From Pecten maximus (lineage: Eukaryota): 64,000 nucleotides of DNA. Of this stretch, positions 7,072-55,900 are shown one piece after another. Both the position numbers and the translations under genes were made by a program. The first letter of the stretch is position 1. Each line of letters begins with the position of its first letter. Below the pieces are notes generated by a model. That model did not search any database, was not told the origin of the DNA, and saw nothing but the letters and a program-made list of their open reading frames with translations. The DNA is taken from NCBI RefSeq assembly GCF_902652985.1, contig NC_047028.1, forward strand, positions 25,606,001 through 25,670,000, given 5' to 3'.

Positions 7072-7152
7072 ATGGACGATTTAGTTATCGATGGCATAGG
7101 GACTATTGAAGTTACAACCACAGACATACCTGATGCCCACGAGGATACAATG
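7072..7152 (+). CDS. Alternative (duplicated) first coding exon of the PDZ/beta-trefoil gene, MDDLVIDGIGTIEVTTTDIPDAHEDTM
   Basis: Start context GACAACATGG is identical to that at 10551. Exactly 81 nt, followed by a phase-0 GTAAGT donor. Aligns without gaps to MASFTIAGLDVDDVTTTLIPEAGTDKS (10551-10631). Confidence 0.75.
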
Positions 7153-10550: not shown

Positions 10551-13500
10551 ATGGCTAGTTTTACCATTGCTGGTTTAGATGTTGACGACGTTACAACTAC
10601 TTTGATACCAGAAGCTGGAACTGACAAATCAGTAAGTACATTAACAGTGAAAAATCAATTATATTTCAACCTTCTTTAACCTTATTTTTGATAAACAGGT
10701 TTCATGATTAATAGTTATTTACAATAACGACATAGCAATGATTGTCTTGTCTTGATTTACATTTAATTGAAAAAAAAATGTAGGTAGATGTCTATTTTGA
10801 TATAGATTCTATACATTTTTTTTCATAATACAAATTAATGTTCACGTCACTATCTTGATATCATGACTGACCTTAACGTACGATATAATGTCTTATCTTG
10901 AGTCAAATGATATATATATGTATCTAAACAGCTGATAGGATATACTTGTTTGAATATAAGTATGTTTAATATTCTAAAATTTGAATTAACCAATATAGAA
11001 AATTTATGATATACTCCTAGAAGGTAAAGAGAACGTGTGCACAGAAAGAGTTTTGCAAGAAGTACTGCGATGGTATCTTGTATACAACTAAAGGCGTGCC
11101 ATTCGTTAGCGTTGACCAATATTATCAAAACAAAATATACGAAATAGATTAAAAGAAAGCAGTTATCTTTCTATATATAATCATATAAATGTACCACTCA
11201 TGATAATTATGAATATCTTTCAATTTTGAAAGTGAAATGCAATGGTGATTTTATAATTTTATTATTTTTGATCAAAATATTCAAATACCTTATCAAATAA
11301 CGGAAACATGTACATGTATTTGTATGTCAGGAGACTCATCAATATACTTCATATACCTAATCGGTTTTATCTAACATACCAGCACACTGATACTATGAGT
11401 ATTACACTCATTTTATATAACACTTCGCCGTAAGTTCAATGTTGTTACATCAATACACTCTGGTTCATTGATTCAGTTCCAATGATATATTTGAATGACG
11501 ATTTCCGTGACAATAGGCGATATCATCAACAAACTGTTTGTCACTGTGAATCATATGTATATAGTATCGTTCTACGCTCATGTTAGCGTATGCCCCAGAA
11601 GTAGTGCGTAAAATTGTACCTGCTTCCCGTTGCATGTTGTAGAAAGGCGTTTGGAATTTTATTTTTTCTCTTCTTTGTAAGCAACTTTCTAATATCTCTC
11701 GTCACTACCTAACGTTNNNNNNNNNNNNNNNNNNNNNNNNNNNNNNNNNNNNNNNNNNNNNNNNNNNNNNNNNNNNNNNNNNNNNNNNNNNNNNNNNNNN
11801 NNNNNNNNNNNNNNNNNNNNNNNNNNNNNNNNNNNNNNNNNNNNNNNNNNNNNNTTGCAGTGAAATAATATTAATGAATTATTATTACATATCTATTTAA
11901 TATATTTACGTCATCTCTGACAAATAAACTAGCCAAGATACCCCACAGCTAGTTTGCCGTTAAAAGAACTGAAGAGAATTTATTGTACTGACAGTACATG
12001 AAATGTCAGATAGATTCTAACAAAACCTGTAATTAAACAGGACTTTTACATTTTTCAACTCCGAAGAGTCAAATCAGCCGACGAAAACCTATCGCGGTCA
12101 ACATACCAGTAATATCATGGTGTATTAATGAATTATTATTACATATCTTCTAAATAATTTTACGTCATCTCTGACAAATAACTAGCAAAGATACCACAGC
12201 TATTTTGCCGTTAAAAGAACTGAAGAATGACAACAGAGCCAGTGATATGTGTTGTTAATGTCATTTATTATTATTAACCAAAATGTACTTCAGATCGATC
12301 ACTAAAGTAACTTAAACAATTGTAAAGGTATAACTCTGTTTAACAATGAGGGAGCGAAACTCTGTATCACGATTGAGTCAGCAAAAGTTACAGTCTGAAT
12401 AGTCACATGGTTGTACCCTTGCCTTGCTATAGAACTGCTTGAATGGATAATATCAACATGACACCATCTCTGTTCTGTGCAAGACATCTATAGTTTTCAA
12501 GAGTACCAACCAAGCTCTCTTAATATCTGCACTTTTAGTTTGTAGCTGTTTTGTTAATTTTTAGATATCCATTACAGACAAGCTGGACTTGTGGCAGTTC
12601 ATTATGATCTTTCTGTTGTCTTTTTGTATCCAAATATTTTCAGATTTATTCGTTTTTCGCAGATATCTTCTTTCAGGAGTTCGGTTTTTCTAAGGTAAGG
12701 GTAAGGTGGAATATTTTCCTATTGAACCTTGTCATTACACAGAAAGATGCTCATAAATATAATTTTCAATCTGACGATCACTGCATTTTTCATTTTTTGC
12801 TTCATTGCGAAATATTTCAATTTCTACTCAAGTTGGACTCAATGAAACTACCAAACTTAATCTGTTTCATTTGCTCATGAATTTGACCAGATTAACACTG
12901 ATCAGTGCTTATGAATACATGGTTAAAATCCTTCCGCGGAACGATTTTACTTTTTCTACATTGTTGTTATAAATAAAATATGGAATAATTATTACAATTT
13001 TCAAATTTATAATGTATTCTTGTATTTTATGAAAGACCAGATATGCTAAATGCTTCTATTTTGACAAAATAATGCTGTTTTTAATCCTAATATTGCGGAC
13101 TATTTTACTCGATCGACTAGACATGCACAATCCGGAACTCCTCGGGCTTTTCCAGATTTGGACTTGCCCAAGCTTCGAGACATTAATATCTAGACCTACT
13201 TTTTTATTCGAAAAAAAAAACCAATTGAAATATAAGGATTGAATCTTGATTTGGTCGATTTCATGGGGTCATGAATTGAGTTGCTTTTGAGACAAATTCT
13301 ACATGAACTGCTTCGCAGTTCATTAAATTTGTCTCAAGAGCAACTCAATTCATGACCCCATGAAATCGACCAAATCAAGATTCAATCCTTAAATAAATCA
13401 TCGACAACTCCTTTCTACATACTAGTCATATCCCCTTGTTAAGTTTTAATTGATTAAACATTGAAGTTGTTAGCAAATATCATCTTTTGTTTGTGGTGGC

Positions 13501-16500
13501 TAAGACGCAATATATATAATAAAACATCTATGTCAGGAAATATCGGTAACCTAGTCACGTGATGTTGTATATACGCAGACTTTACAAGCACGCCACTTGT
13601 ATATACCATGGCAAAATAAACATCACTATCCAACGTGTACACAGTATGGATGTACCAGACGGATTATTTTGTGTCTCGCGTCACACCGCTCATGATGAAA
13701 CTGATATTGGACATATAAAACCATACCATGTAAGTGTTCATAAATATATACTCTTTATGCTTGCACACGTATTACTTTGCTAATGTAAAGTGATGGTAAT
13801 TTTGACAAAGTTTATTTAGATATGTTGATTGCTAACATTTTTTTTCAGAAATAGTGTTTATTCTTTGAAATCTTTCTGTTTTTTCATTTGAATATTGAGA
13901 TTAATAAATTACAATTACAAACACGCCATTTCGATTTTTTTATATCGTTTAATTAGCAAAATATATATATTACATAACACTGAAAATGCATTATCACACA
14001 TATAGATGCAGTCAAACCTGCCTTAGTTGACCACCTGAATTAAGCAACTCCCTCTCAAATGTGACCACATTTTCCCTCTCAATGTTATTTACTATACTAG
14101 TAACCTGATCCTGGATTAAGAGACCATATCTGTCATATATTCCAACTTCAAATGCTTGACTCGCGATCTACGGTTTAAAGTTTAAACTAAACGGACAGTG
14201 CGAAAACGTGGACTTTATAAACATCCACAGGGAAAAAAGAACACAATAATTGATTGTGAAAGAGTTTATTCAAGATGGATACATATGGCACAGCGACAAA
14301 AATACAAGTCATGTGAGAAACATACGGATATAATGGATACTATTTCTTTTATTAATGACTTTAAGATAATTCCCGTAGATAAACTGTATTTTATAGAACA
14401 TATTAGGTTTTAAGTATACGTTAGTAATTTAAAAACTGTGACAAATCACATGTCTTCATCGTTGCCCGCTGATCCTGGACATAATTACGAATGCTCTGAC
14501 AGTGAAAGTTATCATGAGTACTTAAACTTTAAACTATGTTTGAACAACCTGGTATATATATTGCTTGAGATTGTATTTCAGTATCTCCTCAATTCAGACA
14601 TTACAAAACAAATAAACAGACACTGTTAGGCAGTGCAGTCACAAAGGGGAACATGTAACCATAGGGACGTCATCTGAATGTTCAACAATGTACAACAATG
14701 TATATAATAGGCAAAGGGAGCAACATTGACCCGCATTCTGAAAATATATATTTTCGCTTACGTGCTCAATCTTGTGCCTATATAGATGCCAAGTTTCCCT
14801 TTATTTTGTTGTGTATTGACGCTGGAATCCAGACCAGTAAATTGATAAATGTACGCAAAACCGCACCAAAATATGTGTGACCTACTTATTCTTTCGAAAA
14901 ATAAAGTTCAGTAGTTCATGGTTAGAAATTACCAGTGTTTCTACTATCAATTCACCATTGACTGTATATATATAAATTCAGACAAGTATGTTGTGATGTT
15001 ATGATCTTACAGTATGTTTCATCAATATTACATTGAGGAAGTCCTAAGCCGTGTCAGGAAATCATAAAGTACTGTTACTTCCGCAAACAATCAATCGGCT
15101 TTAGGACACCATCCTTTGTGTTGTGTCATCTTTTGTTCCGAGTATTTGACCGATAATATCTGGAAAAACAAACAGTCTAATATTAATAATTTACATAATA
15201 GATTCAGAACGAGTGTTAGGATTACATATCCTTCTCCAGACAACAGACAGCATGCCTTTAATGTGGCGTATCGGCGGGCTGTCACGTGATGTTAGTTTAG
15301 ATACGTCAGACCAGATTACGTTTACTTCCGTTTGGTTTTAAATGAAAAACGTGCATGAACTGTAAGAAGACAGTATTAAAGAAAAAAAATGAATAAATTA
15401 AATAAATAATAAAAAAAAAATGTTTGCCAACTTCATTCGTTTTGCATAATGGTATCTTACTCTTAATTTGTTTTGAAAATTGCTTGTTGACTTTTGCACA
15501 TTGATTTAAAAATGTCAGAACGGGATATGGCAATCAGCTGGCTTCGTGGTAACGCAATTGCCTTTCAACTAGGCGGTCGAAGTTCGATTACCCGAAAAAG
15601 TAATGGGACACCTGCCAAACCATGTTCATGTTAATGTGCATTTGTTGTAAAATGAATAAAGTTTATATTCAAAGGTGCTTCAAATATATGTAAGGATGAG
15701 TTAATATTAATTACTGCTTAGTTGTTGAGATTTATATTTACGTTTAAAATGGATATACGAGGGAAACAAACGCAAGTTGATACTATTGAAATGTACCTGA
15801 TGTTGATCATTGTAGCTTGATTTATATATGTTTACCATAATAGTATACAATGCATGATACAAATCATATAAACACCTACATGAATAATGAATAAAGACAA
15901 TGACATCACTTTATGCCATGTCTGCATTCATATTACAAGGACATTCCCGGATATTGATAAAATACCTGGAAAAAAACAAACAGTAGATTTAGAAATATGT
16001 TATCCGTTTAAAATTCTTTCTTAGATTTTGTCCATTTCATGATTGAATAGCATTGTTTTTTCTTTAAATGACTTGTCGGTAGTTTCTGTTCTGCCTTCTC
16101 TTTTGTTATTTCCTTTTCAATGAACAACATTTCAGACGTGACAGAATCCTACAATATTTTGTAACCAAGGTATGTCCCATATTGATGATGTTACTTAACC
16201 AAGATTTGGCCTATATTTGCATGGAGACTGTAGTCGGAGAAGCAGAAGACGCTATCTCTTCCGGGACAACTGGTCTTCTCCTTTTACGTTTACAAGGATG
16301 TACATTCAAATAGTTACTTTTGTTTGTATTTTGCCGTCTTGTGTCGTTGCTTTGAGCAGGGATAACGACTTTGTTCCAATATCAGTGTTCTCTTATTTTT
16401 TTCTAAGGTGCAACCCGTTGCAGATGCAATCCCCCAACGCTCTGAGCTAAGAGTTAAGCATGCGCAACAGGACCACCCGGAGGGGGATCAGTTAGGAGGA

Positions 16501-19500
16501 GCACTCGTTACATATAAACATGACCAGGGATATTTCATCCATCGATTTGAGGAATTTGGCTTATACAAAAAATCTCTTTTAAGAGACTCTCTTCATTTGA
16601 AGTAAATATAACATTAATAGAATATATATGTATGTATATGAAGTTGGAAGAACTTGTTTTAAATCTAAAGAATTATCAGTATAGCGCGAAAAATGTAGTG
16701 TAAAGTTTGCTATTGCTTTGCCAAATAATAAATAACAATGTTTGAAATCAATATAGCGGCAATAAAAGATGTTATTATTTTCCCGTAATTGTAATCTACA
16801 TTTCGAAACAGTCATGAATGTAATTTATATATATATCTATAACATAATTCCTTAATGATAAAACACCTCTAAACTCTATATACCAATTCATTAAGCATTC
16901 CAAGCAAAGGAGAAGAGTGTGACTTTGTAATTTTTTTTTAACATTACAGGCAAAACGATCAGCTGGTCGAGCTCAATGAACATGATGTGAACACACTAGA
17001 CCACGACACAGCGGTGAAGCTGTTTCTGAACTTAGAAATTGGACAAGATAACACGATTGTAAGCCTTGCTCGAAAAACGTGCATGAAAAACCTTATAGCA
17101 GGTTTATCAATCAAAATCAAGTAATGTCACTAAAACTGTTCTTAAGCTGTTCTATGTAACAATTAATAAGCAGTAAATATTTAAGCCCAGTTGGCAATAG
17201 TCGCAGAAAATCTAATTGCCAATATGGAATAAATATTAGTAAATGTTATTGTCAATGAAGCTGACGACGGTCAAACTCCTGGAACACCTGGTATTTCCCC
17301 CATTAAACTCATTCGGGATCTCCATAAAGATTAATATTTTTTGTCATATTGTGTTCTCATTCTTTTTTAAGAAACAAAGTTAGAAATAAGGGCTTTGTTT
17401 TTATTTCCGTATGCATTGGTTGATTTTTATGAAACTCACAAAAGAAGTATTTCCAAATTCCAACTCGACAGGTATTGTGAATTAGTGATAATAATAAAAC
17501 ACTTGGAATGCAAAATGCCTACGCCGAAGCCTTGTTATGCCATATCACCAGAGCAAATCATTACGTCAAAACAGACCACTCAGTAAGGGTTAATATTTTA
17601 ATATTATTTATGTCTAAATCTTCATCACGATAACAAAGTCACGACTTAGCTATGTTTTTGGCTACCTATAATGTGTCGTAAGTATATATCAAGAACAACA
17701 GAGAAGGACTGTTTCCAGTAAATGTCATTTTATTAAATGACGAATAACATGTCAGCCATGCTGCCTAAACATATTTACAACATAAACAGTATCTTGATAT
17801 TATATACAACATAAACAATACCTTAATATTATATAGCCAAAAAGGTGGAGCACAAAATACGCCACAGGACTGTAATGATGTACGTCATTTCAGGCCCGTG
17901 CCAAATATGATATTGTGTTGTTCATATTTATGAATGTACTACGTCCTCTATGTACGCGTTCCGGTCTAATTTCAACCACCCGGAAAATGTCAATTGATAT
18001 ATATTACCATTTTAAATACAATGCAATTGATACATTTTGATGCATCGGTCGGCATCATGCTAAAGTTTCACGGAAATATATATCGTCCAAAAAGACCCTA
18101 TAATGTCACTGAAAAACTATACAGTTCACATGTAAGTCACTAGGTTCCCTACAGAAGTGTTAACGCAGTTAAAGACAATTTCCTTTTTGTTCTCACGCTT
18201 GAGCTTAAACATCATGTAAATATGTTTTCAGCTGGCTGCCAATTACCAAGTTTCTACAGATTCACTACGGAAAATAACATTCACATTATATGGCTTCACA
18301 ACAGGTAAGTAAAAATACAACGACGACGACGACGTCTGATTTAACGTAGACCATCACACAGTCCCCTTACCTACGCAATCTACATTTTTGTTTATTTTAA
18401 TTTAGTTTTAACACATAAGCCATTGACATTACGTGTGGTTAATTTTCGCGATCGATCCACCCATTTGTAGTTAGAGCTTACTCCAATTGGTATCCAACAA
18501 ATAAGCGTGGGTGAAATTTTCGCGATCAAAAGGACTTGGCGTAAATTTCCCCCTCGCGTAAATTTCTACTTTTACAGTAGATTATAATTTGAACGGTTGT
18601 CCTTTGTCGTACATTGTAAATATAGATATTTATTCTACAGAAAAACCCGAAGAGGAGGAGGAGAAGCCGATGGATATGATACGGGTAGAGAATGTTACAC
18701 TAACGTCAATGCATTTAAGTAGTAAAGCCAAAGATGAGGTGACTATTGCAACAAAGAAGAAGCCACATTTGTACCTAAATAAAGACCTTTCATTTACATC
18801 ACCCGGAATTCCTGAAAAAGATAAAACAGGTAAGATGATCTGTTTGGCGAAAGCTAGGACTAGGTTGGCGTTCTATATTAATGACCTGCTGTATACGTTA
18901 TCATTCTCTTAACGTACGGCGTGATTTATATTGGTAACCGTTAAGGAACAATGTTATATTATCCGTTTTCCGTTTCAATACTTCTCGTATTTCGTGTTTG
19001 TATTAGGATATATTGCTCACGGGTTTTCGTCTGCGCTGGTCTATTTTATCCATTAGTTTGGAGGGGCCGCGATAGCTCAGTCGGTCGGAGTGTCGGCAAT
19101 GTAACCTCAGGTGAGGGGGCCGCGATAGCTCAGTCGGTCGGAGTGTCGGCAATGTAACCTCAGGTGAGGGGGCCGCGATAGCTCAGTCGGTCGGAGTGTC
19201 GGCAATGTAACCTCAGGTGAGGGGGCCGCGATAGCTCAGTCGGTCGGAGTGTCGGCAATGTAACCTCAGGTGAGGGGGCCGCGATAGCTCAGTCGGTCGG
19301 AGTGTCGGCCATGTAACCTCAGGTGAGGGGGCCGCGATAGCTCAGTCGGTCGGAGTGTCGGCAATGTAACCTCAGGTGAGGGGGCCGCGATAGCTCAGTC
19401 GGTCGGAGTGTCGGCCATGTAACCTCAGGTGAGGGGGCCGCGATAGCTCAGTCGGTCGGAGTGTCGGCAATGTAACCTCAGGTGAGGGGGCCGCGATAGC

Positions 19501-22500
19501 TCAGTCGGTCGGAGTGTCGGCAATGTAACCTCAGGTAAGGGGGCCGCGATAGCTCAGTCGGTCGGAGTGTCGGCAATGTAACCTCAGGTGAGGGGGCCGC
19601 GATAGCTAAGTCGGTCGGAGTGTCGGCCATGTAACCTCAGGTGAATGTTCGAGGGCGTGGTTCGACGCTCCTTTCCTGTGTCGGTTTTTATAATTCCCGG
19701 AAAGCTAAAAAAAAAAAAAAAGGGTCGGTCTGGGCTGTCGTTGTTGTGTTCCTGGGCAATACACTTTACCCTAATCGCTCTGGGTGGCATGCGACGGACC
19801 TCGCGTTCAGTGAGGTAGTCACCACCTACTACAATGAGACAACGCCTCAAATGCCCCTGGCTGTTCACGGGGCGATAAACCCAGCATACAAACAAACTTC
19901 ATACCTCATACCTTCAGAGTACAAACTGCCCTGAATAGATAAAACTTTGTTAAGTTTCATAAATATGTTGTCGAACGATCTCCACTTTTCTTAATAATCC
20001 AAAATGTTCATCTTTTCTTAAACGGTGCCTTTTACTTGTGTAATAAATGTCACCAATACATTTTTATTTCCTCTCGCCTTTAGTTTTTGGACTGTTCAAA
20101 AAGGGTTGATAAATTTTCGAAACATTCGGAATTCATTGTCAGGTTCCTGAAATCGAAAATATTGCAATATATATAATATATAGTTTAGGTAGTTGATGAT
20201 ACTCCCACTCTCAGTCACGAATAAGTGTGCAATACATTTTCATATAGTTTTCTTGCTGATATCCACTTCTGAATGTTGCTATAATAGAAGAAGAATATAA
20301 TGCTTTTTCTTAATAATAAACCGTTCCTGTTTATTTTTTCAAGTACATTTCATAAGACATCGCTCGCGGAAGTTTGTTAACATGGCAGTAATTAGAAACA
20401 CAACTTTTCAACGAAAGGATACTGGCTTCCTGGCTGTCGATGAAAGAGAAAATGTGGTACGTATGCGGTATGCAAAATTGTTATTTTATCGTTTGCTTTT
20501 TATAATAGGAAGGGCGATATGAACGAACAATGATTTTATAAAAACAGTTGGCGAGGAAATGGCTAAAATTTCAACAACTTTGCCGATCCAAACCAACTAT
20601 ATATTTTTTAATCAGGAAATATTTTATCCGTGTCAAAATAGGAAACAAAATCTTCTTTGATTATCACATTGTTGATTATTTTGTAACAAGTGCCCGTTTG
20701 TATTTGAAGAATTGCTATATATGCACTACCTCATCAACATCATTAACAGTTTAATATTGCATGTGTACGTCTTGTTTAATTATTCTGGTTACTAGTTACA
20801 CAAGATAGCAAGTAAAGGGTTTAAAAATGTTGATTCTTCTTAGAGAACATCCCGTAGAAATTACCCATTAAACAGCAACATGAACCTCAAAAATATTATC
20901 AAACCTGCTTTTCAATCAATGTAAGTTGTTATATTCTAACAAACAATTTATTCACAAACACTTTTCTTTGATATCTCATAAAATGGTGTAATTTGATGAA
21001 ATCGATCACAGAACAGATAGTATCATCATTTCCCAACTTATTTACAGACGCTGCTGCCCAACTCTCATCCTAATGTGAACTTCGACGCAAGTTTCAACAA
21101 TTGGGGTAATTGGTATATCGAGTCCAAACGCTGTGGTAATTATTGTTTATGATTTATTAACATCGTTTAGCATTTATTAAATCTACTGAAATGTCAAATT
21201 AAAGAAAAAGAAATAAAAAAACAATAAACTACTCGCTAGCGTTCATGAACGAGGGCTTTGACCGGCATATCATAAAGTTTCGAATCTTGTCAAACAATGG
21301 TATACATCGTTATCCGGATAAAGACATTGGCCTCAAACTTTTGTCCCTGTAGTCGGTGCCATAACCTCCATTTTATACATATCGATTGTTTAGAGGAACA
21401 ACATGGGGTGTCTAGAAGTAAAGGGTTGTATTTAAAAATATAGCAATTTTTGGATTTTAATAAATTACAATTACGAGTGAGCTTTTCTTATATAATTTGC
21501 ACTTTATATCAATGGAAATTGTCTAATTCTTTTGAATCGCCAATTATTATAACAGAACTAGACCATTTCAATAGATATAATTTAAATATTCTATAAAAAA
21601 ATTCAATCTTAAATTGGATAAATTTGAGATACACCCCTTTACTTATTTCTCAGAAAAGGAAAATATCAACAAATGTATAACCAACTGTTTCTAAAGGTTT
21701 CTTAAAGAAACTGTCGATAACACCTTGACTTGGAATCATATCAATTGAGCGATCGGGATCAAAGGGGTTTGTGACAGAAATTATATTTCATATCTTCAGT
21801 TTATTTTTGAGTATCATCATTCATTACTGATTATTTTTCGGTGTAATAAACAATATATGGCCCTGGAGGCATGGTAATATGAAAGTTTGTTTACCCTCAG
21901 CTCTCTTATTTCCCTCGGGCAAGCCCTCGGGAAAAATGATACCTTCGGGTAAACAAACCTTCATATTACCCTGCACCCAGGGCCATAAATGCATAATATC
22001 AAGGTTCATTTTTCTAAGTATATGCGTTGGCAGTAGTGTTATTGCAATTTCTCATATAAATGGTTTTAGTTGTACATACATTGAAGGTAGCAAGGGTCAA
22101 ATACTTGAGAAAAACTTTTACAATATCTAACGATCAATAACGTCTAGGTAATAATTGGGTGTTAGAAAGTACATATAAATATAAACGCAAAGGCAAGTTC
22201 CAGAACTCGCAGACTTTAACGTACATATCACTATACGTCTTATTTATAAAACATTATTACGTATTACGATAATTTGTTGCATAATCGAATGATATTGAAT
22301 TTTATTCATCAAAATAATATCTTAATTGACTGTCTGTTTCTTGACATTTTAGATTTATGGCTAATTTTTTTATCACATGTTATGCTATCATCTTAACATG
22401 TCGACGATTACATGACAATAAGTTTAAGATGTCAAATCGACATAAATTATGTCGACAAATGTATATCAATCATAACATGTAGAGGTCCATTGACGTAAAC

Positions 22501-23186
22501 TGGTATTAATCACAAGTAGAGGTCCAATGACTTCTCCGTATTATGTTAATAAATTAATAATCAGAAGCTGTTTCATTGTCTAATATAACACATTACACGC
22601 GTAAGTTTTGCGTCATAACGCGTAAGGTTCGAGTAATAATGTGAAACTTAAGCTATAAATTTTCATTATTTAATCTCTCCAACGGTTCTCCAAAAACGGC
22701 AAAATACAAGATTAGCTTCATTGTCATCAGATAAAATTGAAACTGACGAAAGTCCGCTAAAGATGGTCATGTGACCAATGAAGATAATTGTATGTGCTTC
22801 TTAAATAGTACATATTAATATAAATTCAGTGTCCTTAAACGAAACTTCGTAAAAATGTTTTCAGGAATGTTTCATGTCCTATCTTTTTAATTATGGCACA
22901 TTTCGCGTAGGCAAACAAAAATAAGTAATTCAAATTACAGTATGTTGAATATGCCACTAGCAATGCCCTAGATTGTTATACATTTTTTGTTCACGGTTTG
23001 AACAGAGCAAGAATTATATGACGTTTCTGTACGATAGTATATATATATATATATGAGATATATATAATTTTGTTTGTATTTCTAGGCTGTTTTCTTGCTG
23101 AACGCAACAGAAGGCTGGTTACCATACCAAAAGACATGGATGGTCAGTTTATCATCAAAGCTGTCGACTGCCGGCATTGTCTCTAG
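10551..23186 (+). CDS. PDZ-domain + beta-trefoil (IL-1/FGF-like) protein with no signal peptide, 336 aa, 9 coding exons
   Basis: Exons 10551-10631, 16408-16601, 16950-17058, 18232-18304, 18641-18829, 20344-20456, 20858-20920, 21048-21135, 23086-23186. All are GT-AG with phases 0,2,0,1,1,0,0,1, total 1011 nt, ending TAG. PDZ signature: GYFIHRF...LHLKQNDQLVELNEHDVNTLDHDTAVKLF. Linker EKPEEEEEKP. Three trefoil-like repeats: VTIATKKKPHLYLNKD..HFIRH / TTFQRKDTGFLAVDE..CFSIN / WYIESKRCGCFLAERN..QFIIKA. AATAAA at 23456. The exon model is strong; the fold call is inference. Confidence 0.8.
11717..11854. other. Assembly gap (138 N)
   Basis: Run of N. Confidence 1.
13233..13391. mobile_element. Near-perfect 159-bp palindromic MITE-like element
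   Basis: TAAGGATTGAATCTTGATTTGGTCGATTTCATGGGGTCATGAATTGAGTTGC... is mirrored by ...GCAACTCAATTCATGACCCCATGAAATCGACCAAATCAAGATTCAATCCTTA. Centre TGAACTGC-TTC-GCAGTTCA. Confidence 0.85.
15536..15625 (+). mobile_element. Second tRNA-derived SINE family fragment
   Basis: GTGGTAACGCAATTGCCTTTCAACTAGGCGGTCGAAGTTCGATTACCC..GGGACACCTGCCAAACCATG, similar to 9010-9115 (-). Confidence 0.55.
19063..19644 (+). repeat. 53-bp tandem repeat x11 (SINE head)
   Basis: Unit GGGGGCCGCGATAGCTCAGTCGGTCGGAGTGTCGGCAATGTAACCTCAGGTGA. GATAGCT starts at 19071, 19124, ... 19601 (period 53); copies are near-identical. Confidence 0.97.
19063..19897 (+). mobile_element. tRNA-derived SINE with 5' head tandemly amplified 11 times
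   Basis: A-box TAGCTCAGTCGG in each head unit, then B-box GGTTCGACGCTCC after the last unit. CORE-like GTGTTCCTGGGCAATACACTTTACCC; 3' end CTGGCTGTTCACGGGGCGATAAACCC..CAAACAAAC. Homologous to 5262-5553. Confidence 0.85.
21856..21987. mobile_element. Palindromic MITE-like element
   Basis: TATGGCCCTGG..GGTAATATGAAAGTTTGTTTACCC pairs with GGGTAAACAAACCTTCATATTACC..CCAGGGCCATA; centre CCCTCGGGCAAGCCCTCGGG. Confidence 0.75.
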
Positions 23187-24038
23187 ATATATACATTACG
23201 TCATTACGGAATGCTGTTTCGTGAAACAAACTAATCCAATCCTGACTGTTTTATGCTGATAATGACCAAAAGGGATATATATATATTTATATTATTGATA
23301 TAAGATATGACTAGTTAATGTGTTTGCTTTTTACTTTAAATTTTCATATTGATATTAGAAGATAAAGTTTACTTACTTACTTGGCTGCTGACAGGATATG
23401 CTATTGCCTAAATGTAATACGAGCAATGATAACTAATCATAAACATTATTTTGCAAATAAAATTACCTTCAATGCTTGAAATATGAACCATTTCATATGT
23501 TTTTCACTTCACCTTAATTGTGACCAATGTTCACAATCAAATAAGTCTAAAGCAATTAAGTTTACATAGACTGATTTGATACGCCTGTGACCGATTAAAA
23601 TTTTTTTTAAGTGTCACTTTGTTGATTTGATACTGTTCATCCTTCTTTACACCGAATTAACATATGGTCAAATCATGTCACCAAAGTCGCGTTGAAAAAT
23701 GGATGGTTAACCACTGTGATGGATAAACTTGATCGAAGTAAGACACAAATTCTTGTTATACTTACATCCACTACATCATGTCAAGATTGATAGCCATTAA
23801 ATATTGCTGTACAATACAGGTTAAAATGTCTGATATATTTTTGTATATTTCCTCATCATTGGGCTTGCTATTTAATGGCATTTGATTGCAGTTTTCTGAG
23901 AACAGGGTGCATATCCTTTTCCCCAGACTAGAATCATTGAAAGAATCCTCCCCTACCTCAAGGCTGTGATAACGAATCTCCAACTCTACGGATAATATTC
24001 TTGTTGTCTGGCCTGTGGCTCTGTCAAGTATACGATTG

Positions 24039-24715
24039 AATTGTTGACATATGACGTCACTGTAATGTTGTAGTGACGTAATTGAATGTTGACATGTGAC
24101 GTCACTGTAATGTTATAGTGATGTAATTGAATTAATATCACGTGACGTTACTGTTATGTTGTCGTGACGTGATTGTATTGTTTATATGCTACGTTATTGT
24201 AATGTTGACATGACGCGATTGTATTGCTGACGTGTGACGTTACTCAAAGGTTGACGTGATACGAGTAAATTGCTGACATATGACATTACTGTAATTTTGT
24301 CGTGACGTGATTGTATTGTTGACATGTGACGTTACTGTAAAGTTGTAGTGACGTAATTGAATTGTTGACATGTGACGTCACTGTAATGTTATAGTGACGT
24401 AATTAAATTGTTGACATATGACGTCACTGTAATGTTAAAGTGACGTAATTGAATTGTTGACATGTGACGTTACTGTTATCCTGATGTGATGTGTTTGAGT
24501 TGTTGACATGTGACGTTACTGTAATGTTGTCGTAACGTGATTGGATTGTTGACATGTGACGTTACTTTAAAGTTGTAGTGACATAATTGAATTATTGACA
24601 TGTGACGTCACTGTAATGTTGTCGTGACTTGATTGGATTAATGATACGTGACGTTACTGTTATGTTGACATGATACGAGTAAATTGTTACTGTAATGCTG
24701 TAGTGAGGTGATTCA
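24039..24715. repeat. 46-bp minisatellite (~14 copies) rich in CRE/ATF motifs
   Basis: Unit ATTGTTGACATGTGACGTCACTGTAATGTTATAGTGACGTAATTGA; period 46 (24361 to 24407). Confidence 0.9.
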
Positions 24716-34076: not shown

Positions 34077-37000
34077 CTACTTTGTTTTTGTTTTTCTTCT
34101 GTAGTAGAGAACCTGGCACGTCAAAATAATGTTGAGTATGATAACTTGTATGAATGTCAAAATCATAATCCAGTCTTTTGTAAGAACAATCGACGTTGTT
34201 AATCGTCCACAACTTTGGAATATACACAAAAACGTTGACGCTGCTGACAGTTGTCCTGCACTTTTGTTTTTGTGATTCGTGTATATCTGTATAATCTGAA
34301 AAATGAAAATAATATTATTATTAAAAGACACTATTTATTGCCTACTAAAATCACAAACCTCTGCTGCAAACTATTTCAACTAATCCTTTTGATGCACTAT
34401 CAAATTTTACTTCAGCTTTGTCTACGTTATATAATTCTAAAGATGATAAATATTTGTTTATCAATGAGTTAACAAAAATCTAATAAAGTGTTTATACATA
34501 CAATGTACATGTATTTGCATTTTCGAGCAAAATTTAGCATACTGTTGTAGGTTTATGATTTTGTACGCGTTTTAGTGATAATCTTATTTTGATAAAAATA
34601 TTGCGTTGAATTATTGTTGTTCTATCTGTTTATTGTTTTATAAATGATGTATTTTGGAGATGTCATCCTATCATTACACTGATGTGGTTTTCATTATACA
34701 TGGCAACTGATTGTGCCAATTGAAAACGTAGTTTATTGATGCAAAACAACCTTAACATAACAATAATGAAGACACGTTATGCTACATTAAAATCAACAAA
34801 AATCTTTATGATACCGCCCTATCATAAAACATAAAAAAATAAATAAAATAAAATAATAAAAAAAAAACAATTTGCAAAAATAGACCCATTACAATTCCCT
34901 TATCTATTTAAATTCTTTAACTTAAGTTTGTCCATATTGAAAACAATATTTGATATACGGAAACAAAACTCGTTCTTCCTAAAATTATGTAATGCTTTCA
35001 CAGGTAAACTTTAAGCTGAAGAATTTCCTTAAGTTATAAATATTGATGAAACATTGGCCTGATATTGAATAATGCATTCGCCGAGTAAATACTATTTTCT
35101 ACCAATTTTCAAAGAATAGTTAACCTTACCCGGCTCGCACTAGCTGCTGGAAGACCGATGATATTGATGAATAAGATGACATCGCTAGGAATGACGGGAA
35201 GGATGAGGACGATCATCACAACGATGTAGAAAATCATAAAGGAAAGTGACGCTAGGGGGCGTTTGTTGTAGCGTAGCAAAAGGCACACCAAAATCACATT
35301 CTGAAGCATGAACACTAAATTCTCTCCCCACGAACTGAAAAAAGATAATTCAGTAACATGTATTGTAAAACTTTCTAGATAATGTAGAATAAATATATTT
35401 TGACTAAAGTAAACATGACTATATATCGCTTTATTTTCGCGACAGATTTATTCTCAAGAGATTATCTGTAAGCGAAGTTAAATCTCCCACGTTTCATTAA
35501 GAGACATGTAATTACGTTTTGTTATTTTTTAAAATCTCAATTTGTACACCGTTTTAAAGCTCCATTGACCTTAAAGAATCAATGTGATTGTTATATCAGA
35601 AGAAACAAACGGATACTACTTACTTGATTGGGTATTCCTTCGATAGTGAGTATGCTACACTTGAAGAGGACGCTTCCAGCATCAGCAGCATGCTGAGGAA
35701 ACTGACTCCAGAAGCATTTCGCCGACGAAGTATTTTGAATATTTGAGGAATTTGACCTAGAAATGACAATGATATTCATCTTATCTCTAATCTCTGAGGA
35801 CATAAACTACTAACGCAGACGTTAAACACTGAAATGAATCTGGATAGAATGCCTCTCGTTTAAAATGGAACAACAATTTGTCATCAATTACCAAGAAAAG
35901 TATTTGTAATGAATACTACCCTGACTTAATAATGAAATACTAAACTTAAACAACAGTTTATTTTACAAAATGCTATTTGTTTCTGGTTTCCGTAATTTTT
36001 ATTTTTGGATGGTGCTTGTATACATTATATACTCACTTATAGTTGCACTGCCGATGAGGAAATACCCCAGTGCTTTTGTAAACAGGATAAACCAGCATGA
36101 ACCTATAAATAAACAAATATATCAATAAATACATATCATAAACATATCTATTGGAATATGAAAGAAATTCGTCCCGATAATCCTTTTTTAAACGACTATC
36201 TATTCACATAAGAAGAGAAAACGATTTTTTTTCAGATCTAGCATTACAACTTAACAGCAATGATACATTTATATATAATTAATCTTACTTTGATTCTTTT
36301 TAGCTAAATAGTTTGCTAAGTATTATTTCCTCAAGGATTTGATTTTATTGTTATCGTTAAATGTTTTTTTTTTTTTTTCATTTTAACTGTCGAAATGTGT
36401 TCATGCTATTGCTTGGTTTTGTTACATATCAGTGTGGGTTTAGACATTGTGTACACATACTGAGTACAGATAGAGCATAGGTCAACAACTTATCACAATA
36501 GTCACGTGATTCAAGCCACGTAGACGTATTCGTAACCGGAAGTCGAATTAGATTTCTCCCGTCACATTTGTTATCATTTTGTATGTAAACGTTATTTGTC
36601 TAGTCTCTCTATTCACTAGTAGAACATACGTTAATCTAAGGTTTAAACAATATTATTTCAATGATTTTCAAATCGACCACACGACGATATTTAATCATTT
36701 ATCATTCAATGAGTTAAAATGAATACATTGCATACATATTGCATTGTTTTATCTCATTATTGCTCTCTCTGTCTAATGAATGCAAATAGCGTGAAGGTGC
36801 ATAATGAAACACCAATTGCAGCTTTTTACTTATTCTAAATATAATGTTTGAATTCTCCTCTTCATTTGCCTATCAATGTTAATGACGTAAATAAACATTA
36901 TACTTGAAGCATGCATCGAAACTAAAGCCATCCAAATGAAAAGTAAAACTTCATGGAATAAAGTTCACCAGATTGTATACGGATATCATTTTTCCTCTTT

Positions 37001-49900: not shown

Positions 49901-52900
49901 CCTAGATCAAAGGAAATGTGTTCAGGATTTGTTGCAAATTAACAGATTGAGCTGTTTGTTACAATATGCATATAACACAAGGAATCTTTAAGATTAATGG
50001 AAAGAGTAGGCCTATTACCCCCTCCCCCCTCGGGCAATCACAATTACAAACACATATCTATCAAGATGTAACAAAATTTCCTCAAATGTGGAATTATAAT
50101 TATTGTAGATACTAATTTCGAGCTCAACGTGTAAAAAATGATGTTAGATAAAATATATTCGACTTGGCAAAATGTTATATGAAAACACCAGTAAAGGGAT
50201 ATAACTCTGAATTCGCAAATTGACATATAAGTGTTTATTTTTGTTGCGTATACCCTCTTCAAGATCGGTACAACTGACTACATTTTCGAATTAAAATCAT
50301 TCGAAATAACAATAATATATATTATATCATAGTAATAACAACAGCGGGTCTTACGACATGAGAGCGGGCTTTCCTCCTTCCGGTTTGACGTCATCCAGGG
50401 TGTAATTGATTATAGAGTCATCATCGTCAATCATCGCTGAACCACAGTAGCCTGTTGAGAAAAAAAAATTACGAGATAATCTTTTGAGAAATAGACGATG
50501 ATATTGGTAATCTTAAATCTGCATCTTGTAAAAAAATCGAATATGATCCTGTAAATGAAATCATGGAAGATAGGATTTTTCACAACTGCGACATCTTTGT
50601 GTTTAGGTCGCAATGGCGTATTCGGTCGCAGCTACAGCGATATCTTAAGACGTTATTTGGTACCATAAACGTAAAAGAACGCAACAAAAGAAGCATTCCC
50701 CCGTCGTTACTTAAGGTTTCACTATCAAATAACTGTTGACTTCCGCCAAATGTGTTGAAAAGTATTTTACAGCTTGTTTGTAAGGTATCATTTGTTGACA
50801 AGAATGACCGTATATTGATAGTTATCTTAATAATATTCATGACTTTGCTGATACGATCATATTCTGACGTTACAACACATCACCTTAGAGTGTTTATGGT
50901 TGGATACCTCTTAGCAATAGCAAAAGCAGAAAATTATTTGGTTCCAGAGGAATTTCAGCTATAAGGCGGTCGTACGATGGAAACTTTTGAAAAAAATTAC
51001 TTGGATATTCAATCGTTAAAACTTAAAACCGAAGTGTACCTAAGTTCTGTTCATATATGAATTCGATAATATAATCTTTGTGGACATCTTACCTCGCTCC
51101 CTCCAGAAGGGTTTCGTATAGTAGGTGAAGGTTTTGATCACTGATCCCATTGGGACTCTCTGTATCATCTGATTACGGAGAGTTGGCAAAGGAGGGTCAA
51201 AGGTTATTTTACTTTGCAATGGTAATGGCACAGCGCTTATCACATAGCCTGCCTGCAAAGAAGCCATTGAAAACATTTTCTGTGAATGCAGTTGAAATGT
51301 AATGTATTTAATAAAATCTATATCATCCGCCAAATTTCCAACTTACCAAGATAGATAAAATAGGATAAATATAAGGTAAATAAATTATCTTTCCTGATTC
51401 GATAATTTACAGGCATCAACACGATGCATATCTGAGCTATCCCGTGCCGACAGTAAGCTTAACATATATCTCAATTCGCCTTGGGTTCGTTATATGGTCC
51501 GTAATTCCATCGATTGGCATTTTATTGTGCAATGTATGTTGCTAACGTTTATGTACATTGAGTAAAGCACAGACATGCAACAGAAATTCAATATTCACAG
51601 CTCGACATGTAGTCGTAGGTTTGGCTATGGTTTAAGATAGAGAAATCAAAAGTGTCATGAAAACAAAATGACACAATCGAACTGTCTCATTAAATCAAAC
51701 ATTTTATGCTATGGTTTTCGTTAAAAAGGAAAGAAAAAGGGGAAAGAGTCATTTTAACAGCTATTAAAAACCTAAAAACTTTTCTTTTTCTAAGTACATA
51801 CCTGATATTTGTTGCCGTGTACATCAATGACCTTCACTGTGCTTTTCTCCTGTTGTATTTGGCAAACTGGTTTTGACAGCAACACTCTGTCTAAAAGTTT
51901 CAAACAAAATAAAGGTAATATTTGGGAAACATACAAATTGGCATGCAAGATGTACCTTATATAATGTACTTCAAAGAACACGTAGAACAGTTTATAACCC
52001 TGATTATCCTATCTCTTCGAGGTGAACTATATGTTTGAATATCCACATGTCTAAGTAGATTCAATTACAAACGTGTTAAACATGTGAGCACACACAGACG
52101 TGTTTTGATATCTATTAAAACCCTGATTGACAGTCGAACCAATCACCATTTCGAAATAAAAATGTTCGAAATTATACGGACAACTAATACAAGATGAAGT
52201 GGCGTTTGATTGGCTTTGTACAATGCACGGATGACGTCCTCATGATATCTTTAGAATCAACTCATTTTATTTTAGCATCGGGCAATTGTAGTAAATGTTT
52301 TATTATATAACTGCTATACAAACCCTTTCCAAGTTTCCTAGCTATATGTTGGCTAATTTGTTGTGAACCGCCAACGAATTTTCTCTCCTGTTAGCGTCGT
52401 TCATAGAAAAGTAATGAAGGAAAACTTAACACAATGAATATATATACCTCTGATAATGCATAATAATATCAATAACACATATCATTAGACCTTGGTTTAG
52501 GAAAGACTTATATGAATATTTAAAAAAAATACGATTTTGTATCTATAGTAGTAACATAAGTAGTTAGGTATCTAACAATAGAGAAATGTGTCTTTTGTAG
52601 GTTAACATTATGCAAATATTGATTTTACCACAACTGCACAAACAATTGAAAATACATAATTAATGACAGTTGCTACATCTCCGACAGTGATTGATTATGT
52701 TAGGTTGAAAACAAGAATAATTGCTGTATATTCTATACAATACCAAGAGTAATATTTTTGGGGTAATCAAATTTCACTATATTCGCAATCATTGAATATA
52801 ACGCGTAATGTAGACCTAGTGAATATTTATAGGCACAAACAAATGTATAGAAGTGATAACTGCCTAATGTTTTCAAGGCGTATTTGCGCGAACTATTATA

Positions 52901-55900
52901 CCTGTGAACGAAGTCAGACTAGGAAAACCACGAAGTTTTACCGACGTTAAATCTAAAAATATGCAGTAACCTATTACCAACCTCCAAAATTCAGCTTTTT
53001 ATCTAATCATTTAAATGTTGTGTCAATAAATAATCATTTTCATAACAAATGAAATCTAGCGCGTGATCCGCCTTTATGATTTGTATGTAAATGTAACATT
53101 CGGCCCTGTAGGTGGCCACCATCAAGACTTTTTTTCATTTGTTAGCCTTAATTAGAAATATTTCGATAACGTTGTTGCAACTATGTGCTTAGTGCTGAAA
53201 AGTAGTGTTTAAGCTGTGTATCACCTTTAAAGAGCAGAATTAAAAACATTGCTTTGTTATGACCGTACCTGTCCGCCATTGGACGTAGAAAATATTCTGT
53301 GCGTACCTCCGCATTGTCTGACATACCAAAGAAACCATAGCAACGAACATTCGTACGGTTCTGACGTCACATTTAGGTTAACGAATCCCGTTGTGAATCT
53401 TTTCACAGCACTACAAGAAAGCAGACTCGTTTATGCGACTATTTGTTGTAGTTCTGTTACTTTCAATATTTGGCTATAGAATGCTTCATGTATATTGCAA
53501 AAGCCATCAGTTCAGAGAAGATTCTTTCGTTAGCAAATAATATAATACAAATCTATATATGTATTATATTGTCGCTTCAACTCTATTGGAAATGATTTAA
53601 TATAACATTTATGTCACATAATGCAAATATAGGTTGTATAGAGAATCGCTTGTGTCGTTTGCAGAAGCATTCAGTTTACAAAAGACGCCATCGTGGCACT
53701 ACAGGAAGGTTCAACATTCAAAAAAAGCTGAGTCAATACATCCCCTGACTTCTAGTTGTATGCGCTGCTTTCAAGAATGAAAATATTTACTAGTTCTAAA
53801 TTGCAGAACTTCATAATGCCCATAGGCTGTTAATCAACACATTTACCCCTTTTATGTCATTTTAAATCATGCCAATATGATATAACAAAGACGAGATTGT
53901 GACGGACCGACATTCCTCAAGACGTAATTTGTCTACCCCTAAATATTTCAATATCTAGAAAAGAGTGAAAGCCACAATGTCTAACATGCAAGAACCGTAC
54001 GTCTTTAAATCATTTGGGTTTAAAGCAAAAAAGAAATATGCAATCATTACCGTTATGCTATCGACAACAATAGCCCAAGGATAACTTTCACCGAAGCAAT
54101 CTAAGTGACATTCCAAGTTCCTGACTTTTATCAATTTGCTTATTTTGATACAATTTATTGACTCAGTGCCACTCTTGACAGAGTGAACATCTAACTACAT
54201 AACATATGGTAAATACAAAACGTGAAATGCTGCGATAAAGATAGAGACTTACTCTGTCCATGCGTATTTATTGAGAAATTCCTGGACTGTCATATTGTCC
54301 CACTCCTCTGCGTGTGGGGAATTCCATGGCGCTGCCTCAGGTACCTACAGTAGAATGATTTATATGAATAAAACCTATCAAAACAAATTTTATACACAAC
54401 GATATCGATATTTTCTTCTTATGAACTAATTTGATAAACAAAGATATAATTCTTTCACGGGAAAACAATTGTATAGCAATATTAATATCCGGAATTACCT
54501 CACTTCCCATCTCATCTATCACACGGAAAACCTGGAGAAGATCCAAATGGGCGATGAAGCCTCCCATTGGCGGGAAAGAGCTTTTAAATCGCCTGCTGCT
54601 TCCCTTTCGAACCAAGAAATCACAACGTATGATAATCCTGAATAAACTGTTTACGGCACGGTGAGAGTTTGAACAAAGTAAAAAAGGCATTTCATCATTT
54701 ATTTTTGCAATATTTTTTCAAATATAAATCTTCGTTATATCACAGCTAAATAGAGAATATATGACGTGCTAATACAGTTACAGATATATTTTCCCTGGCA
54801 TATTTTTGTGACTATCTTCTTTCGTATTATTTTTCTTCAACATTGCTTTAAAAAACTGTAAATGTAGAAATCGGTCATTTGTTTACGAAATTTAATCTAA
54901 TTTACAAATTTGATGAAATCCAAACATATAAATATATAAATATTCAAAAACAGGATTGATATTAAACATTGTTAATAGATGAGAAGATCGAGGACAACGA
55001 CAAAACTAACCTTTCTGTAAATGACAAGATCTTCAACTTCATTAGTTAGGTAGGTCTTGACTCCGAATTCGTCCGCCATACGTAACAACAGGTTTTGTGT
55101 AGGACCAACATAGGCCCCTCCCACATCCACGTAATTAATGATGTCATTCTGAAAAAAATATTGCGAAAATTCATACATACAAAAATGAACATGTGAGTAT
55201 CTTTATAAATAAGCAATAATTGTATACTTGCATTGTATTGCTATTCTTTTCGATACATCTGCGACATACCCTCCAATACTGATTAATAAGCATTTGTTAG
55301 GAACCCATTAGTGTAAAATAAATGTTAATATTTTGATTCGCGCTCCATGATAACTATATCCTGCGGAGCAGTTCATGTTGGATCTGTCTCAAGAGCAACT
55401 CTATTCATCACCCAATGAAATCGACCAAAGCATTATTCAATCCTTGTTTTTCAGTTAACACGTGGTAAACACGATTATGCAGCATATCTACCAGTAAAAC
55501 AATAATAAAAATAGTATGATTTAATTAAAAAAAAAAAAAAAAAAATTGCGGTAGAATTTAAATTTGTTAATAAAAAGGCTTCGCCAGCTGCGCAGACGCA
55601 TCACTCTTATTAAAAATTTCATTTAAATTTATTTAAATTCTAATAATCTTGATTACACAATGCCTATCATGTAGATCCAAATATCTTACAGAACAGTCCC
55701 ATCCACTTCCTCCAAAGACCTGATAACCTCACGTGTATGTTATATATGACTCAAAACTATTCATACAGAATAAGATATCCCCTAATAGGCCTAACGTACG
55801 TATGAATTAGGTTACAGTACAGGTTCGGTAGAAGCGGGTGGTTTACTGTATGCATGTATTTGATGTCAATCTGGTGAAATTCATGGACAAATAAAAACAT

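Follow-up and report, generated by a model that had tools for sequence, protein, structure and literature searches.

Interleukin-1 (IL-1) was long held to be a vertebrate invention. That view changed in 2025-26 with the description of a family called IL-1anc ('ancestral IL-1'), whose members join a PDZ domain to an IL-1 trefoil and lack a signal peptide, and which places the origin of the cytokine at the base of Eumetazoa (Fontenla-Iglesias et al., Nat Ecol Evol 2026, PMC13736523; preprint July 2025, PMC12338702). According to the text of that paper, the proteins are shorter than 500 residues and occur throughout Eumetazoa, from cnidarians to fishes; each bivalve examined has multiple genes, and three genes of the great scallop, Pecten maximus, namely PmaxIL-1.1-1.3, were modelled. 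Here, we describe LOC117342090, a multi-exon gene on the plus strand of a P. maximus window (the whole stretch of DNA analysed, 64,000 nucleotides of AT-rich sequence at C14:25606001-25670000). Its product is probably a member of IL-1anc as the published family is defined, judged by its architecture and its chromosome.

Several further marks of the family are given in the same text. The C-terminal domain is a beta-trefoil of 12 strands that can be superposed on IL-1. The motif (F/L)ES lies in strand 9, and the trefoil is encoded on three to five exons with two conserved central introns. The sequences diverge fast, and invertebrate members validated by structure have no sequence similarity to IL-1. 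The ancestral IL-1 locus is inferred to have been linked to GCC2 and ESD; in P. maximus, IL-1anc is placed on chromosome 14, as part of a linkage group that is also conserved in cnidarians and vertebrates. Cleavage is reported there for only one sea-urchin member, and no contact between ligand and receptor is shown. The family as described there includes the lumpfish protein nIL-1F. A first-pass annotation of the window, made from the letters alone, had stated that this teleost protein combines PDZ and IL-1 domains, and the literature confirms the statement (PMC7144542, PMC13736523). The same annotation had presented the scallop protein as a cytokine of ancestral type in a lineage where IL-1 is usually considered absent. 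The leaderless PDZ-trefoil architecture that it described is that of IL-1anc; the IL-1 family model PF00340 is silent, Fascin is nearer, and the kind is not new, having been published in 2025-26 with this species included, so that the claim of novelty no longer holds.

The protein of LOC117342090 starts with a short variable N-terminus, followed by a PDZ-like region (residues ~36-152), an acidic linker (~153-183) and a compact trefoil-like domain that reaches the C-terminus. The PDZ-like motif and the acidic linker quoted in the first-pass annotation are both present in the RefSeq protein. Neither a membrane segment nor a hydrophobic N-terminus was found in any isoform or orthologue (maximum 19-residue Kyte-Doolittle mean 1.54 over seven isoforms and orthologues). 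The earlier claim that a signal peptide is missing agrees with a test of hydrophobicity, in which, over the first ~60 residues of every isoform and orthologue, the highest Kyte-Doolittle mean of any 10-residue segment (segments starting at residues 1-50) was at most 1.35. The orthologue set consists of the proteins of Pecten, Argopecten, Ylistrum and Mizuhopecten, and the profile used below was built from these four. Identity among the four scallops is 65% in the PDZ-like part, 49% in the trefoil-like part, 38% in the linker and 29% in the N-terminus.

Three weak tests concur on the front half, all of them below threshold, and they suggest that residues ~36-152 are a divergent PDZ domain in the N-terminal position that defines IL-1anc. 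Firstly, when the orthologue profile was compared with the PDB, five of the seven matches were PDZ domains (E-values 0.08-2.4; the best named match, the MAGI-1 PDZ domain 3bpu_A, had E 0.083), and the alignments keep the correct register along the GD-x-I-x-x-VN strand, through helix B and into the last strand. Secondly, Pfam PDZ models matched at E 0.12-0.2, with 12.5-13.2 bits against a cut-off of 23.2; in a Pfam scan of seven single exons, the one match of any kind was to PDZ, on exon 3 (E 0.19). Thirdly, among the clusters of the Atlas, compared by language-model features, the named ones nearest to residues 30-152 all belong to PDZ families. In the scallop domain, QLGGAL stands in place of the GLGF loop. 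PF13180, one of the two PDZ models used for screening in PMC13736523, gave no match on C14.

The back half gives signals of the beta-trefoil clan only, which are consistent but weak and appear to point to no IL-1 in particular. The Pfam family Fascin (PF06268) matches the proteins of all four species in one register, with residues ~234-295, spanning exons 6-8, aligned to positions 35-96 of the 108-position profile as a single domain. The best match has E 6.7e-4 and 20.2 bits (range 14.5-20.2 bits against a cut-off of 23.1), and the four proteins that share this register are only 43-61% identical over the trefoil-like region. FGF1 (PDB 3bb2) is the only solved trefoil that was matched, at E 0.73. 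For residues 165-315, the family-bearing Atlas neighbours shown are Fascin, FGF/FRG1, RicinB_lectin_2, CCL2-like proteins and the inhibitors I48/I66, all of them trefoil-fold families. Their scores of 0.86-0.88 serve as leads only, since shuffled proteins at times score as high, and ranks one and two are taken by unnamed clusters of bacterial hypothetical proteins.

The genomic setting is in keeping with the published family. C14 is inferred to be chromosome 14. The only two genome matches to the ESD-type esterase (PF00756) lie on it, 22 kb apart (C14:716602-738954), as does one of the four genome matches to the GRIP domain (21675041-21675136). The presence of LOC117342090 on C14 together with the ESD and GRIP matches agrees with the published IL-1/GCC2/ESD linkage group, in the sense of a shared chromosome and not of microsynteny, the genes being megabases apart.

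The layout of introns was also compared. In LOC117342090, the introns of the trefoil-like part have phases 1, 0 and 1, those of the PDZ-like part are of phase 2 and phase 0, and the intron at the boundary of PDZ and linker is of phase 1. Within the trefoil-like part, an exon of 113 nt is flanked by a phase-1 and a phase-0 intron, and the tripeptide I-E-S follows 24 residues past the phase-0 intron. The trefoil of human IL1B has introns of phases 1 and 0 with FES ~29 residues later, which would be the same arrangement as in the scallop. It may correspond to the two conserved central introns of the published family. FGF genes may share phases 1 and 0.

As the first-pass annotation had expected, the gene is known to RefSeq only as 'uncharacterized protein LOC117342090', with isoforms X1 (XP_033759971.1), X2 (XP_033759972.1) and X3 (XP_033759973.1, 315 residues) of 315-316 residues. 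Each isoform is reproduced exactly by splicing exons of the window. There are eight coding exons per isoform: one of three mutually exclusive first coding exons is spliced to seven common exons, and all junctions are GT-AG and consistent in phase. Isoform X3 is made of exons 1b and 2-8. The exons and the other features of the gene are as follows:

7,072-7,152, plus strand: exon 1a, alternative first exon of isoform X2; 27 codons, starts MDDLVIDG, donor GTAAGT; exact to XP_033759972.1.
10,551-10,631, plus strand: exon 1b, alternative first exon of isoform X3; 27 codons, donor GTAAGT; exact to XP_033759973.1.
11,717-11,854, no strand: assembly gap of 138 N; intronic, between exons 1b and 1c, touching no exon.
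13,646-13,729, plus strand: exon 1c, alternative first exon of isoform X1; 28 codons, starts MDVPDG, donor GTAAGT; exact to XP_033759971.1.
16,408-16,601, plus strand: exon 2, common, opens the PDZ-like domain; ends in phase 2; shows the highest conservation within the protein.
16,950-17,058, plus strand: exon 3, common, PDZ-like strand 'QNDQLVELN...' and helix B; ends in phase 0; carries the weak PDZ matches.
18,232-18,304, plus strand: exon 4, common, closes the PDZ-like domain; ends in phase 1; conserved in orthologues.
18,641-18,829, plus strand: exon 5, common, acidic linker (EKPEEEEEKP), after which the trefoil-like domain begins; ends in phase 1; covered by RNA; single-copy in the genome.
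19,063-19,644, no strand: non-coding tandem array in intron 5, 53 bp x 11 (98% matches by Tandem Repeats Finder); a poly-A/T-rich element comes after it.
20,344-20,456, plus strand: exon 6, common, trefoil-like, HFIRH ... TGFLAVDERENV; 113 nt, ends in phase 0; continuation in RNA from 18,829.
20,858-20,920, plus strand: additional exon of the first-pass annotation ('...CFSIN'), probably not an exon; 63 nt, phase 0/0, AG/GT ends.
21,048-21,135, plus strand: exon 7, common, trefoil-like, NVNFDASF...NWYIESKRC; ends in phase 1; X3 residues 254-283; orthologue profile E 4.8e-9.
23,086-23,186, plus strand: exon 8, common, last trefoil-like strands (CFLAE...QFIIKAV) and stop codon; X3 residues 284-315; profile E 1.7e-10.

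A gene of nine phase-consistent exons and 336 residues had been proposed earlier. The gene is real and its junctions are indeed consistent in phase; the RefSeq isoforms have eight exons and 315-316 residues. The longer model fits isoform X3 with the 63-nt exon at 20858-20920 added (336 = 315 + 21 residues, and 9 = 8 + 1 exons). This exon is absent from RefSeq X1-X3 and from the proteins of Argopecten, Ylistrum and Mizuhopecten, and it is probably spurious. RNA contigs that end 700-717 nt past exon 5 would, if the exon is left out, end at an A4T8 run near 23597, which is a weak hint against it. Another candidate, in which exon 3 was extended to 17101 and followed by a 51-nt exon at 17240-17290, was ruled out by the lack of RNA coverage, by the joint from 17058 to 18232, by RefSeq and by the orthologues. 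Because the assembly gap is intronic and exon 1c, used by isoform X1, lies 3' of it, the continuity of the coding sequence does not depend on the gap, which may hide an unseen exon.

Transcription was followed in Logan contigs of four runs from four studies, aligned to positions 16300-18950, which are clear of the tandem array in intron 5. In a 31-mer search, RNA-type runs held about a tenth of the words of positions 13187-23186, roughly the exon content of that interval. In all four runs, one contig of 1151-1408 nt carries the joints from 16601 to 16950, from 17058 to 18232 and from 18304 to 18641, all with GT..AG ends. After 18829, the contigs of all four runs continue with the sequence of 20344-20373, save for one synonymous difference. 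LOC117342090 is thus transcribed, and in each of four studies single contigs covering exons 2-6 connect its PDZ exons with its trefoil exons. The lack of such a connection in RNA-seq had been named beforehand as a refutation of the cytokine proposal.

The use of alternative first exons is also visible in RNA. At the upstream ends of the contigs, the last 30 bases of exon 1a stand directly before 16408 in three runs, and positions 13700-13729 of exon 1c are found in two runs. The RNA supports exons 1a and 1c, and the junction of exon 1b to 16408 rests on RefSeq. Exons 1a and 1b are similar to each other, while exon 1c contains the sequence DETD. The exon 1c type is conserved in other scallops, since a similar segment is present in Argopecten, Ylistrum and Mizuhopecten and the orthologue profile matches exon 1c.

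The coding sequence is polymorphic: at positions 17012, 18670-18671 and 20366, the RNA contigs depart from the assembly in all four studies. The difference at 17012 replaces Ala113 by Val, which is the residue of the other three scallops, and the reference individual carries the rarer Ala113. At 18670-18671, in the acidic linker, Met163 is replaced by Thr in two runs and by Ala in two runs, and the change at 20366 is synonymous. Separately, intron 3 (17749-17864) and intron 4 (18440-18579) are touched by short RNA contigs that belong to other, more abundant transcripts or to repeats; these are probably derived from repeats, and their loose ends on both sides are foreign to LOC117342090.

A number of observations weigh against an IL-1 assignment. 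Pfam IL1 (PF00340) has no match at E up to 10 in the eight proteins scanned, and none in the six-frame translation of the genome (the bacterial control genomes also gave none, as expected). No PDZ or Fascin match reaches the curated Pfam cut-off, and the nearest family, both by sequence and by language-model features, is Fascin and not IL-1. AlphaFold2 gives no confident fold, with a mean pLDDT (predicted local distance difference test) of 30.6 on alignments of both 4 and 11 rows, and the Atlas contains no structure of the protein. The stretch NWYIESKRCGCF resembles the FGF sequence WYVALKRTGQY at least as well as the IL-1 pattern FES..P.WY. At the place of the [F/L]ES motif, Pecten and Argopecten have I-E-S, and Ylistrum and Mizuhopecten have I-K-S; in an alternative alignment, where NWYIES is laid on NWYIST of IL-1beta, the tripeptide would fall in strand 10 and not in strand 9. 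No TIR gene is present within 5 Mb of LOC117342090: a TIR search of the genome gave 93 matches, those closest to the gene on C14 lie at 19.8 and 38.7 Mb, and no IL-1R-like neighbour was found. In the published text, the PmaxIL-1.1 trefoil has the bounds 126-290, which does not fit the protein of LOC117342090 (PMC13736523). Finally, a cytokine function of the mollusc members would follow by analogy with the family.

These observations could be accommodated if the protein were not a cytokine but an intracellular scaffold of PDZ and trefoil, with a trefoil of the fascin, FRG1, FGF-homologous-factor or lectin kind that would bind actin, sugar or another protein, and resembling IL-1anc by convergence or as a sister family. 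In its favour are the missing signal peptide, the compact trefoil-like domain (~120-150 residues) and the PDZ domain, which is a typical part of intracellular scaffolds. The Pfam listing names one trefoil family only, Fascin, in four of four orthologues; there is no IL-1 cluster among the Atlas neighbours shown, and the FGF1 match and the silent IL1 model point the same way. However, fascins are built of four tandem trefoils and have no PDZ domain. The missing similarity to IL-1 is equally true of the structure-validated invertebrate IL-1anc proteins, and the chromosome is the one named for IL-1anc (both according to the text of PMC13736523). In addition, the trefoil-like domain evolves faster than the adjoining PDZ, which fits a ligand exposed to immune pressure more readily than a module of the cytoskeleton. 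On balance, a scaffold of this kind is unlikely.

The three pseudo-repeats reported in the first-pass annotation survive in part. The motifs HLYLN/HFIRH, TGFLAV and IESKRCGCFLAE/QFIIK are present, while CFSIN came from the probably spurious exon at 20858-20920; the real sequence at its place is NVNFDASF. What remains is a loose three-fold pattern (HLYLN ... VHFIRH; TGFLAV ... NFDASF; CGCFLAE ... QFIIKAV). That this pattern arose by chance, and that the C-terminal half has some all-beta fold other than the beta-trefoil, is very improbable: the putative repeats are not significantly similar to one another (E 0.19-0.29 in profile-profile comparison with hhalign), one motif was lost with its exon, and all trefoil matches are below threshold or, in the Atlas, at scores that shuffled proteins sometimes reach, but the Fascin match recurs in one register in four such divergent proteins, the ten best family-bearing Atlas neighbours all belong to one clan, and even in true trefoils the sequence similarity among the internal repeats usually falls short of significance.

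The favoured reading, then, is of LOC117342090 as an IL-1anc gene, and its relation to the three modelled P. maximus genes deserves comment. No mention of XP_033759971-3 or LOC117342090 was found in the literature searched, which did not include the supplement of PMC13736523. By sequence, the gene appears restricted to scallops. A phmmer search of 1.84 billion representative proteins with exon 5 found one true relative, P0004 of Argopecten irradians (322 residues), in addition to four low-complexity matches, and protein searches at E up to 10 found no homologue outside Pectinidae, with four scallop clusters as the only matches. Exons 2 and 5 are single-copy in the P. maximus genome (918,306,378 bases in 3983 contigs), where neither these two exons nor the orthologue profile, used as queries, revealed a paralogue. 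It is tempting to speculate that LOC117342090 is a further, scallop-restricted PDZ-trefoil paralogue beyond PmaxIL-1.1-1.3, which would have been missed because its PDZ domain is below the thresholds of the hidden Markov models used for screening, and whose three first exons would give three pro-peptides; this possibility is a tentative one. If it were true, the first exons would provide different Asp-containing sites (e.g., DETD in exon 1c), and one cytokine domain could be processed or localised in an isoform-specific manner.

By analogy with the IL-1anc family, a sequence of events can be proposed for the scallop protein. It would be synthesised as a cytosolic pro-form, in which the PDZ part would serve as a pro-domain or an anchor. 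Upon an immune signal, a caspase or another protease might cut in the N-terminal or linker region and remove the PDZ-bearing part. The product might then leave the cell by a non-classical route, and the free trefoil domain could act on an Ig-TIR (IL-1R-like) receptor. The only caspase-like Asp of the linker is D164 (KPMD), which is absent in Ylistrum and Mizuhopecten.

Since the origin of IL-1 at the base of Eumetazoa was argued in 2025-26, the present locus adds little to the argument: a checked gene model, RNA support for the join of PDZ to trefoil, and three alternative N-termini. It also adds a caution, in that its domain is nearer by sequence to trefoils of the fascin/FGF type than to vertebrate IL-1. 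Bivalves are an aquaculture group, for which an inflammatory cytokine axis would be of practical use.

Little else in the window can be named. A second tandem array, 46 bp x 9.6 (80% matches), lies at 24035-24476, ~850 bp downstream of the stop codon of LOC117342090. The only other nameable gene is represented by an exon of a flavin amine oxidase at 51043-51342 on the minus strand (Pfam Amino_oxidase, E 1.4e-11), and probably also by 54975-55202 on the same strand. The interval 35112-35447, also on the minus strand, looks like part of a multi-pass membrane protein and has no Pfam match.

When set beside known systems, the scallop protein shares different properties with each of them. With FGF (FGF1), it shares a compact trefoil and the weak profile match already mentioned, and its stretch WY-x-x-x-KR-x-G resembles FGF. 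It differs from FGF in that the scallop protein has no match to PF00167 and FGFs have no PDZ domain. By sequence, the C-terminal half is matched best by Fascin (PF06268). The two differ in layout, since fascins are arrays of four domains, while the scallop protein has a single domain, matched below the cut-off, behind a PDZ.

Classical IL-1beta and IL-1alpha (PF00340) are leaderless pro-forms with a C-terminal trefoil, an organisation that the scallop protein would share. In contrast to the scallop protein, they have no PDZ domain; the scallop protein in turn lacks both the PF00340 match and a conserved caspase-type Asp in the linker. The teleost nIL-1F (lumpfish, 352 residues; PMC7144542) is closer, being a leaderless protein of ~350 residues with PDZ and IL-1 domains. 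Its IL-1 domain is recognised by InterPro, whereas the scallop protein matches no IL-1 model.

The closest system is IL-1anc itself, as described in the text of PMC13736523. There are differences: the PDZ domain of LOC117342090 is below the Pfam thresholds, the motif is I-E-S or I-K-S, the trefoil is short, and the three alternative first exons have no counterpart in the discussion of that text. What the two have in common is the order of an N-terminal PDZ domain, a linker and a C-terminal trefoil-like domain without a signal peptide, a length below 500 residues, a motif near the C-terminus that may correspond to (F/L)ES, a trefoil-like part on three to five exons (four in the scallop gene), fast divergence, the species and the chromosome.

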